Shown here: positions 3,001 to 5,789 of the stretch, piece by piece
How positions within the stretch are numbered: position 1 is the stretch's first letter
Layout: every line of letters starts with the position of its first letter
Origin: Orbicella franksi
Lineage: Eukaryota
Direction of reading: 5' to 3'
NCBI GenBank assembly: GCA_964199315.1
Contig: OZ116705.1
Span: forward strand, 5,580,001 to 5,644,000
Length of the DNA stretch: 64,000 bases
Translations under genes and position numbers: made by a program
Notes under the pieces: generated by a model
The model's database searches: none
Told to the model about the DNA's origin: nothing
Seen by the model: only the letters and a program-made list of their open reading frames with translations

Positions 3001-5789
3001 GACATCACCAAAGAATGTTCAGATGGCATCGTCAGTGTTGTTCACGAGGATCTCAAAATGCAAAACGGAAACCTCAGTGCCTCAATTGCTTGTGCAAGTG
3101 GTAGTGCAGTTCAAGACGAGCTGACAGCAAAGTTTCCTCAGCAGCCTGGGTCTGTTGTGACAACGTCTGCAGGGGATCTGACGGCTAAATACATCATTCA
3201 CATGGTTATAAGATCTGGAAACAAGAAACATCTTCAGAAATGTGTTCATGCAGCCCTTAAAGAAGTTCACTCCATGGGTTTGCAATCCGTTTCTATTCCA
3301 GCTATTGGTACTGATGGGCTGGGATTACGTCCTTCGGATTCAGCTGAAGTGGTATTGGGGACAATTCGTGCATTTTCGGAGGCAGTGAATTCCTCTGGCA
3401 TGGCTTGTGAGTTACGAGTTGTTGCTTTAGAAGATACAGTGGTTGCTGCTTTCAAAAGCAAACTGAAACAGATTAAAGGAGAACTTAATCAAGCCTCTGG
3501 TTTTGCCGAAGAGGACGACGTCGAAGACGAGCCAGTTGGTGTTCAACTACCGCTCACGTGCTTTCAGCATAGAGTGACTGTGTATGGACATCAAGAAGTT
3601 CTTGACGAAGCCATAGCAGCACTGAGAAATAGCGTAAGTAAAGAATGTAGCTCCATTGAAATCAGAGAAGACGTGATTTCTCGTCTACCAAAGCGCTGTA
3701 GAAGGGACCTGAGGCAAAAGGCACGCGAGCAAGACGTGGGCCTAGATTTTTCCAAGGAGGGCGTAATTTCATTGAAAGGCTATCCTTGTGATGTGCTTGC
3801 AATGCACCCTAAAGTATCGAAAGTTCTTAACGATCAAGTTAAGGAAGAACATAAAATGGACTGTGCAGATATGACGGCTGGAAAAGTTCAGTGGTGCTAC
3901 TATAGTGTGAAAGGAAAACAAGAACCATTTGACAAGATGGCCAATTATGACATTGAAACAGCATTTCAGTTTAAAAGTTCTTCTGTTTCCTTCACACATA
4001 AGAATATGCAGGCAGAGATAAAATTTGATTCTAAAGAAGTCAAGTTCTTGAAAACCGGGGCAATAAAGCGTGTCTTTCGTAAAGAAGGTAAGTCACTTCC
4101 TTGCGTTCACGTCACTATAATTACCAAAGAATTGAGAACTTAAACAAAGTGCTACATACATGGCTTTGAAAAACTCAGCGCTCTACCATTGTGGTCGTCA
4201 TGGCGAGTGAAAAAAACATTTGGCGACTAAATTTTACGAACAGGTCACGTCGTCAATTTGGCGACTAGTGCAGTACAAAAGGCTGACTTACCTGTTTTTT
4301 TCTTCTTTTAGTTACTATCCTGAACAGTAAGACCGTTCAACAACACCAAAAACAGTTGCAAACGAAAACTAATAGCGTCGGAACGTTCTTCAAACGATTT
4401 CAATGTAGGGTCGTCGTGATCAGCAGTATTATATTCATGTTAAGTGACACGAATTGTCCTTCTTTGGAAAGCCTTTTCTGGCGGCCAAATTTGTCTTAGT
4501 GGCGACCATTTTACAGAAGGAGGTCGCCTAAAGGCGATTTCGGAATACCTTGAGCTTGGTGCGCTAGCTAATTTAATGAACAGAGGTTTTGCGTTGACAA
4601 TGTTTGGTTTCCTTTGTTCCTTTGAACAATAGTGGTAGAACTTCCACAAGAATGGGATTTCCACCCTCTGGACGGCAAAGGAAGGAAAGAGAGGGTCCAC
4701 TTAGTCCGCCTTGATGTCGATTCACCCGAGTACCAAGATGTTCAAGACAGATTCATGGAATCTCTCTCTGATCGTGAGGTGTCCATCTCAAGTATTCAGA
4801 GAGTCCAGAATCCATCAATGTACCGTTCTTATGTGACGAGGAAACAGAGCATGGACGAGAAAAATGGAATCCATAAAAATGAACGGAAACTATTCCACGG
4901 GACAGGATATCATAACACGAAAGACATAAACGCTCATGGATTTAATCGAAGCTTTTGTGGAAAAAATGGTACGTATACGTAGCACATGTGAAACTAAACT
5001 AGTTGTCTGGTGGTTGGCTCCTATCTCCGGTTTGTAGCTTTAAGTGACTTTGGGTATTCCTACTTCCCCATGGATGGGATGCTAGTCCAACCCAGGGTGA
5101 TTTCCACCATTAAATTCGCCGGTACCCATGCATTCATACATTTGGTTGAAGAGAGGCACTGCGAGATTAGAGTGTCTTGCCCAAGAACGGACCTCAGTTA
5201 GGCCTCGAGTCTGGACCGCTTGATCCGGAAGCCAATGCACTAAATACTAGTCAAAAATTTATCACTTTCCTCGAATGCCAAGTTCTATCCATGTGACGCG
5301 CATGCAAGGAATCATGGTAGTGATGTGCAACTTTGGCAACCCTTGTTGAACATGCTTTGTTGAAAATCGCCACCATGATACCGTACAGCACGTCTCACAG
5401 AGGTAGCAACGAATTCACTTCCAGTTGCCAGGCTTTCTTTACTTTTAGACCAACTTTTAATAACTGTCTGATCCGCAGGTGCGAGTTATGGAGATGGCGT
5501 CTGTTTTGCAACCGATTCCTCTTACTCTTTGGCGTTCTCGAAGCCACCAAATGCTAAAGGTGAACGCTGCATGTATCTTGCAAAAGTGCTTGTTGGTAAA
5601 TTTGCACTTGGTGAAAGAGGGCTGAAGACACCACCACCAATTGATCCAGACAGGACTGAGCATCTTTACGACTCAGTCGTGGATTCACTACACGTTCCGA
5701 CTGTGTTTGTTGTATTCCACGATGACCAGTGCTATCCTGAATACTTAATTACTTTTACAAAAGTCAAAAGCGAAAAGGCGGCTAGCTAA
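1..5789 (+). CDS. PARP-A: PARP14/PARP15-like macrodomain mono-ADP-ribosyltransferase-family protein, 5'-truncated (KH-like region, 2 macrodomains, KH, WWE, ART domain). Exons: <1-1311, 1749-1988, 2605-4087, 4633-4968, 5479-5789
   Basis: ORFs 13-1329, 1758-2012, 2719-4143, 4632-4982 and 5529-5789 join in frame through canonical sites (GAG|gtatct, aacag|GCT, CAG|gtgaga, acag|ATT, G|gtaagt, aatag|TG, G|gtacgt, gcag|GT). Motifs: GNIQEEEADSLVCSV and IALPLIGTGNL (macro), GDITKE..D (macro), QWCYY...FDKMANYDIETAF (WWE), ERKLFHGT, YGDGVCFA, YDSVVD, FVVFHDDQCYPEYLITF (PARP catalytic). Confidence 0.92.
2221..2500 (+). mobile_element. tRNA-derived SINE in a PARP-A intron
   Basis: tRNA-like head (tggcctcgtgg...) followed by the core gagacacttaactctcacagt...aatgggtaccggcgaa and a tail matching the copy at 63262-63562. 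Confidence 0.8.
5018..5240 (-). mobile_element. Degenerate tRNA-derived SINE in the last PARP-A intron
   Basis: Contains ggatgggatgctagtcca, aaattcgccggtaccca and gagaggcactg..gtgtcttgcccaagaac, shared with the other SINE copies. Confidence 0.75.

Follow-up and report, generated by a model that had tools for sequence, protein, structure and literature searches.

The window analysed here, a 64,000-nucleotide stretch of the chromosome-scale, 497 Mb genome of the coral Orbicella franksi (contig OZ116705.1; C8:5580001-5644000), carries PARP-A, an intact and transcribed gene of this scleractinian coral; fold, profile and architecture mark its product as a PARP14/15-type macro-PARP. In its ADP-ribosyltransferase (ART) domain the tyrosine of the H-Y-L/I catalytic motif is replaced by cysteine, giving H-C-V. 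Comparison with related contigs indicates that this cysteine is derived and fixed in a clade of related corals, and that the domain remained under selective constraint after the change. We lean towards impaired or absent catalysis by PARP-A, judging from the sequence and from analogy with an engineered mutant of PARP7.

The NAD+-binding site of PARP-A

A tblastn search of the window with the catalytic domain of PARP-A revealed four catalytic domains, all on the forward strand, in the order A (4632-5789), B1 (22534-23961), A' (31192-32329) and B2 (46321-47519). Motif positions were set by HMMER alignment to the solved catalytic domains of human PARP15, PARP14 and PARP10. The motif His of PARP-A (CAC, 4896-4898) lies in LFHGT, aligned to LFHGT of PARP15; a Cys (TGT, 5502-5504, in YGDGVCFA) falls on the motif Tyr, and a Val (GTG, 5703-5705, in PTVF) on the motif Leu/Ile. 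Among the features of the PARP10/14/15-type clade, PARP-A possesses the fold, the His and the hydrophobic third position, and lacks the motif Tyr. B1 (Tyr TAC, 23689-23691; Ile, 23887) and B2 (Tyr TAT, 47259-47261; Ile, 47457) are both H-Y-I, reading YGDGVYFA and PTIF, and A' reads YGDGVCFA and PTLF. The codons and the alignment therefore bear out an earlier note on this DNA, which had described an H-C-V triad in PARP-A beside H-Y-I paralogs.

In PARPs the nicotinamide is hydrogen-bonded by a Gly and a Ser, and the motif His contacts the adenosine ribose of nicotinamide adenine dinucleotide (NAD+). The nicotinamide ring is stacked by two tyrosines, while His and Tyr orient NAD+ (PMC9189837). 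The earlier note had taken the tyrosine of 'DSSYS' in PARP-A to be the second of these, which proved incorrect: this residue (5523-5525) is the Tyr at +7, which corresponds to PARP15 Y598 (mutated in PDB 6ek3). The true stacking position ('TYSK' in PARP15, Y932 in PARP10) aligns to a Phe in PARP-A (5535-5537, 'LAFSK'). This Phe is common to all A-type orthologs, including those which bear the motif Tyr, and B1 and B2 have Tyr there. The hydrogen-bonding Ser is kept at +8, and across the Cys-bearing clade the His, the Gly following it, the +8 Ser and the stacking Phe are all invariant. Among other paralogs, L037 and L021 (C8:5562254-5562568) keep the motif Tyr with an altered +7 Tyr ('DASGS'), as do L039 and L041 (C8:5.964 and 6.015 Mb; 'DARCS').

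Rarity of the cysteine

A six-frame search of the genome with PF00644 returned 67 exon-level matches, and those copies which cover the motif were compared. Among 33 catalytic copies the Cys is present in A and A' only; the other 31, B1 and B2 included, have Tyr. An exhaustive HMMER search with exon 2 was also made against 1.84 billion cluster representatives, the best 150 matches being analysed. Approximately 154 domains from these 150 representatives comprised 150 with Tyr, two with Cys, one with His and one with Ser. The two Cys representatives are PARP14-like proteins from sturgeons; since they share only about 45% identity with PARP-A, the sturgeon and coral cysteines are independent events. 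Protein P0007 carries two PARP domains in tandem, the second with Ser at both the His and the Tyr positions. We found no description of a natural H-C-x PARP in the literature, and nothing specific on coral PARP14 together with cGAS or, in reviews of PARP14, on variation of the motif.

Distribution and origin of the change

The exon 2 protein search led to exon-sized proteins on coral contigs, and the DNA of these contigs was then compared; they stem from metagenomes and short-contig assemblies and may be mosaics. Public runs that contain the window are labelled as coral metagenome or with coral species names. The same TGT was found in RNA and DNA contigs under three organism labels and also, among public contigs of other coral samples, in over 20 independent ones. 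It is present in 13 of 13 aligned sequences of the Cys clade (11 public contigs, A and A') and in further contigs, representing at least 15 samples. At least six Cys-type lineages can be distinguished, namely A with L069 and L072; A' with L063 and L075; L058; L059 with L071; L073 with L074; and L070 (which corresponds to P0151), all open through both exons and all with TGT. Nine contigs and four P0151-cluster proteins form an unbiased subset, having been retrieved with stretches of the protein outside the Cys position. A DNA pattern for the Cys motif recovered seven genomic contigs from the JGI metagenome contigs, a bait which contains TGT and is hence blind to Tyr alleles; the pattern for the exon junction gave no matches in the same contigs and is uninformative. 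A sequencing or assembly error and a private allele were both ruled out by the recurrence of TGT in so many samples, and the view of the earlier note that the Cys was unlikely to be a sequencing error was thus correct.

Beyond this clade, A-type orthologs carry Tyr. L067 and L068 show 79% protein identity in exon 2 and have the codon TAC; L052 (74%) and L053-L057 (70%) have TAT, and P0152 is also Tyr-bearing. Over the catalytic exons the Tyr-bearing orthologs available for comparison reached 79-80% protein identity, and no Tyr-bearing sequence above 80% was found in the protein searches, including those with the spliced product as query. In a maximum-likelihood tree of the catalytic exons, the Cys sequences form one clade with a bootstrap of 100, L067 is its sister, and L052 and L053 lie outside. 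Because the Cys sequences are monophyletic and L067, L052 and L053 stand outside them with TAC or TAT, a single Tyr-to-Cys change took place, in the simplest case from TAT to TGT, after the L067 lineage had branched off. The earlier note had proposed a survey of orthologs for a fixed Cys and had considered that Tyr in orthologs or other alleles would reveal a private allele; the survey gave TGT throughout one clade and TAT or TAC in deeper orthologs, so that the residue is derived but fixed in its clade.

Gene structure and transcription of PARP-A

PARP-A begins 5' of the window with an RRM exon recognised by Pfam (L051:5956-6342, equal to C8:5577956-5578342). Within the window, on the forward strand, the first exon (1-1311, open frame 13-1311) encodes a KH-like region and was defined by an RNA contig and by homology. 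It has 66-82% protein identity to the same exon in the orthologs L053 and L067, and is homologous to a B1 exon with weak matches to the KH domains of PARP14. The N-terminal half of macrodomain 1 is encoded at 1749-1988, placed by an RNA joint and ending at an in-frame donor (CAG|GT, 1988/1989). The C-terminal half of macrodomain 1, macrodomain 2 and the WWE domain follow at 2605-4087 (Pfam Macro, 6.6e-14; WWE), behind an acceptor AG at 2603-2604 that is in phase. Catalytic exon 1 (4633-4968; PF00644 and a spliced RNA contig) and catalytic exon 2 (5479-5789; alignment, RNA and DNA contigs), which ends in a TAA stop at 5787-5789, are separated by a GT..AG intron (4969-5478) defined by spliced transcripts. 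The two exons are joined across a split Gly codon and PF00644 matches both. All exons are open, and the order of domains is RRM, KH-like region, two macrodomains, WWE and ART; no CCCH zinc fingers were detected in the PARP-A exons scanned. The best solved relatives of the macrodomains are those of PARP14, and together with the WWE domain they may, to judge from their sequence, read ADP-ribose.

Transcription was apparent from the polyA RNA run X11. One contig covers 1-1309 and is spliced GT..AG, with a joint 1309(+2)->1747(+2), that is 1311|1749; a second GT..AG joint, 4085(+2)->4631(+2), corresponds to 4087|4633. An X11 contig over 5488-5900 has no differences from the reference, TGT included, and DNA contigs of X2 and X8, which bear other organism labels, match 5297-5544 without differences. 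In the P0151-cluster proteins P0207 (A-type) and P0202 (A'-type) exon 1 is followed without interruption by exon 2, and their contigs L076-L078 read 4849-4968 and continue at 5479, carrying over 1.2 kb of 3' untranslated region (UTR) and having the 4968|5479 joint in frame with the Cys. Since these proteins and contigs join 4968 to 5479, the last intron is removed exactly as predicted with the Cys in frame, and all three window introns tested have been shown to be spliced.

In X11 the contig depth is 11-18 over the last intron, 25-31 over exons and 0 over the other two introns, and a 414-base contig (5070-5483) covers unique sequence of the last intron. Part of the message may therefore retain this intron; translation of such a message would stop at 4982, short of the Cys. 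An interspersed repeat of about 230-280 bases occurs in both orientations at 2222-2500, 5022-5243 (in the last intron), 56103-56370 and 63271-63552; its contig depth is 1e4-1e5 in DNA runs, it is found in RNA too, and copies lie inside PARP-A introns.

Selection and predicted fold

The ratio of nonsynonymous to synonymous substitution rates (dN/dS) was estimated pairwise by the Nei-Gojobori method over 213 aligned codons, recombination being ignored. Within the Cys clade, the 14 pairs with dS of 0.11-0.26 gave dN/dS of 0.23-0.46, with Fisher p values from 0.026 to 1e-7 against neutrality. Tyr-type orthologs gave 0.16-0.21 and B1 versus B2 gave 0.29. A versus A' gave 0.91, a value based upon approximately 28 differences and not different from 1; three-point distances with L059 suggest values near 1 on both terminal branches, with counts too small to interpret. 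Together with the open exons and the spliced RNA, the values within the clade agree with the earlier description of the PARP-A frame as otherwise intact.

An AlphaFold2 model of the spliced product P0207, built from a 26-sequence alignment, had a mean predicted local distance difference test (pLDDT) score of 83. Foldseek matched it to PARP15 and PARP14 catalytic domains with template modelling (TM) scores of 0.81-0.86 (PARP15, 0.85, with a root-mean-square deviation of 1.6-1.9 A) and, for the top PARP15 matches, root-mean-square deviations ranging over 1.2-2.6 A; by phmmer the catalytic domain of PARP-A matches PARP15 with an E-value of 1.7e-38. Variable sites of the domain cluster in loops (positions 151-159, 166-172 and 181-186), outside the pocket. 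The model and the substitution ratios indicate that the domain keeps its fold and is still constrained after the Tyr-to-Cys change, the constraint being mildly relaxed.

The A' copy and the mosaic 3' end

A' (31184-32332, forward strand) is, by homology to A, a 5'-truncated copy of PARP-A which consists of the two catalytic exons only (31192-31528 and 32028-32332). The earlier note had placed it at 32028-32332, which is correct for exon 2 but omits exon 1. It has its Cys (TGT) at 32051-32053 and a Leu at the third position of the motif. A and A' are homologous from 4624/31184, nine bases before the catalytic exon, through the 3' flank and into the B gene, 4624-6941 corresponding to 31184-33490. 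Upstream of A' there is a BTB-TLDc unit and not the macro/WWE exons, and the splice donor at 31529-31530 reads AT in place of the GT seen in A, L059, L063 and L069-L075. Given the missing 5' exons and the AT donor, the reference A' is a truncated and probably dead duplicate of the two catalytic exons.

In some other contigs, A'-type sequence is still alive. Contig L075 has a macro-WWE exon (98% identical to A) and intron joined to A'-type catalytic exons and 3' UTR (99.2% to A'), its identity to A being about 98% as far as 4968 and about 92-93% in the last intron and beyond. In L063 the upstream intron is A-type, the exons are A'-type and the donor is intact, and L076 and L077 represent spliced A'-type mRNA. 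L069 is a mosaic the opposite way to L075 and L063. The 3' end of PARP-A thus comes in two diverged forms, a pattern that fits gene conversion, or else recombination, among tandem copies or old haplotypes. As the Cys is found in both of them, the earlier claim that it predates the split of A and A' gains support. In the X2 and X8 DNA runs, the only contig on catalytic exon 1 starts exactly at 4624, contains seven A'-type letters and has 1.25-1.5 times the depth of its neighbours; in these individuals exon 1 of A may be no different from that of A'.

Gene neighbourhood

In the source genome the A and B genes lie side by side and point the same way, and Pfam analysis of the window exons placed a BTB-TLDc gene after each B gene. 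Two such B and BTB-TLDc units, as well as A', sit between A and a cGLR gene of the Mab-21 family (56918-59047, forward strand; Pfam Mab-21 and Mab-21_C). At the ortholog locus L067, a cGLR gene (L067:16567-18717) with 77.6% protein identity to that of the window follows 6.4 kb after the stop of A, and no B or BTB-TLDc matches were found within the 10 kb fetched 3' of A. The conserved neighbour of the A gene is hence cGLR and not B. The B and BTB-TLDc units are lineage-specific additions, and the adjacency of A and B is likewise lineage-specific, since in L067 A is followed by cGLR with neither B nor BTB-TLDc in 10 kb.

The 18 kb 5' of the window contain a further BTB-TLDc copy, a retroelement integrase and the RRM exon of PARP-A itself, with no RING or DTC (Deltex C-terminal) gene by Pfam. 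Genome-wide, PF18102 (DTC) matched only on C13 (2.54-2.75 Mb), C9 (9.05 Mb) and C12. The DTX3L-like gene that the earlier note had suggested seeking 5' of the window was consequently not located there. About 10 DTC matches at C13:2.54-2.75 Mb lie approximately 20 kb from a PARP gene (L047; C13:2764000-2767100), and a single one at C9:9052413 lies approximately 28 kb from another (L048; C9:9022400-9025700). These two sites are better candidates for a PARP9/DTX3L-like pair than the window.

PARP domains form large, lineage-specific arrays on C8 (5.47-6.07 Mb), C1 (19.68-19.75 Mb) and C3 (11.32-11.64 Mb). The C8 array around the window has at least 16 two-exon PARP14-like copies, and the copies on C1 and C3 are single-exon.

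Possible mechanism and alternative explanations

All 17 human PARPs, whether active or not, have the motif Tyr; PARP9 (Q-Y-T) and PARP13 (Y-Y-V) have it too, and their inactivity has been ascribed to the missing His (PMC9189837). In PARP7 (H-Y-I) the Y564A substitution abolishes auto- and hetero-mono-ADP-ribosylation and cellular function, and I631A does not (PMC3562000). Since PARP7 Y564A is inactive, impaired or absent catalysis by PARP-A is a reasonable inference, and one we consider somewhat favoured by the sequence and this analogy. In an ancestor shared by a group of closely related corals, a single A-to-G transition, TAT to TGT, created the H-C-V motif, and purifying selection has since maintained the Cys form. 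Elsewhere the NAD+ site did not change: it retains the His with the next Gly, the Ser at +8 and, as the stacking aromatic, the Phe. Cys at the motif position combined with Phe at the stacking position probably makes for much weaker NAD+ binding and for poor transfer or none. The ART domain could have been kept for a non-catalytic or weakly catalytic role, as a binding or regulatory module in an ADP-ribose-reading protein, in what would be an innate-immune gene neighbourhood of cGLR and other macro-PARPs. As the domain is kept under constraint, it presumably has a binding, a regulatory or a residual catalytic role.

Several points weigh against impaired catalysis. Cys, being larger than Ala and polarisable, could still wall the pocket. 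The other NAD+-site residues are invariant in the Cys clade and selection there is only slightly weaker than in the Tyr clade, as would also be expected of a still-active enzyme; and as little time has passed since the change (within-clade dS of about 0.1-0.25, with 51 of 213 sites varying), the absence of decay at the other site residues has little power. The dN/dS of about 0.9 between A and A' belongs here too, but it rests on approximately 28 changes and one partner is probably a pseudogene.

PARP-A may instead be an active mono-ART with a remodelled nicotinamide pocket, in which the Cys alters Km, substrate, inhibitor sensitivity or response to redox state; we regard this as possible but tentative. 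It would account for the invariant His, Gly, Ser and Phe, for purifying selection close to that of the Tyr-type orthologs, for the predicted intact fold and for variation in loops and not in the pocket. Opposed to it are the Tyr found in 150 of about 154 related domains among the best 150 representatives and in every human PARP, active or inactive (PMC9189837), the loss of activity by PARP7 without this Tyr (PMC3562000), and the fact that the stacking residue was already Phe in A-type proteins, so that both Tyr hydroxyls are lost. A reading which overlaps with impaired catalysis, and was that of the earlier note, makes PARP-A a convergent, PARP9-like inactive reader and obligate partner of the B1 and B2 writers or of a DTX3L-like E3. 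The adjacency and common orientation of A and B, and the macrodomains and WWE of PARP-A, agree with it; however, the analogy is loose, as PARP-A keeps the His that PARP9 and PARP13 have lost and lacks the Tyr that they keep (PMC9189837). There is moreover no DTC gene within 18 kb 5', those on C13, C9 and C12 lying in some cases beside other PARPs, and the pairing of A with B is not conserved in L067, where cGLR follows A without B or BTB-TLDc in 10 kb 3'. We consider this reading unlikely.

It is scarcely credible that the Cys is the sign of a pseudogene or of a gene in decay, or that it results from a sequencing or assembly artefact or a private allele. The ratio of 0.91 between A and A', the absent 5' exons and the GT-to-AT donor of the reference A', and the RNA depth in the last intron with its possible retention could be cited in favour, but the PARP-A exons are open, every splice site tested is used in RNA, dN/dS is significantly below 1 in all Cys-clade comparisons with dS of at least 0.11, and TGT recurs in many independent samples and organism labels. 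Decay of PARP-A into a pseudogene is largely refuted by the substitution ratios and the splicing of its RNA. A very long shot is that the Cys-lined pocket makes PARP-A a ligand- or redox-sensing pseudo-enzyme, coupling PARP14-like reading to cGLR signalling in coral immunity. Its ligand might be NAD+, an ADP-ribose-like metabolite or the nucleotide signal of cGLR, or the Cys might be oxidised or ADP-ribosylated. In L067 the adjacency of A and cGLR goes with Tyr, so a link between cGLR and the Cys is pure conjecture.

Significance and comparison with known systems

A fixed, selectively maintained H-C-V motif is a rare natural experiment on the purpose of the motif Tyr, because that residue is kept in all 17 human PARPs, the two classed as inactive included. 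It comes with built-in controls, namely the Tyr-bearing orthologs and the adjacent H-Y-I paralogs, and poses the question of whether mono-ARTs tolerate the loss of Tyr or corals possess a new PARP pseudo-enzyme. Macro-PARPs are known for duplication, loss and rapid evolution in vertebrate immune contexts (PMC4038475), and PARP-like genes have been noted as diversified in corals (PMC6208414); PARP-A offers a concrete, testable case for macro-PARP turnover in immune gene clusters outside the vertebrates. The scope is modest, being one residue in one lineage-specific paralog, and we regard PARP-A as a natural variant rather than a new system.

The closest human proteins considered are PARP14 and PARP15 (ARTD8 and ARTD7, H-Y-L mono-ARTs), with about 50% identity to PARP-A in the catalytic domain. 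PARP-A resembles PARP14 in its RRM, KH-like region, macrodomains, WWE and ART, and in the His and hydrophobic third position of its motif. It differs from PARP14 and PARP15 in the Cys at the motif Tyr, the Phe at the stacking Tyr and its place in a coral-specific tandem array; two macrodomains were recognised in PARP-A compared with three in PARP14. Like PARP9 and PARP13 (ZAP), which act in antiviral immunity and of which PARP9 has macrodomains, it is a retained PARP with a non-canonical motif. Those two, however, keep the Tyr without the His (PMC9189837), PARP-A being the reverse, and no head-to-head, DTX3L-like partner such as that of PARP9 was found near it. In PARP7, a mono-ART of PARP-A's own class, the Y564A mutant likewise has a small residue in place of the motif Tyr (PMC3562000), but this is an engineered Ala in a different PARP subfamily. 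Natural parallels are the sturgeon proteins KAK6467774.1 of Huso huso and MGH0124573.1 of Acipenser sinensis (P0096 and P0110), which are lineage-specific and PARP14-like with Cys at the motif Tyr and, unlike PARP-A, also have Thr in place of the +7 Tyr.

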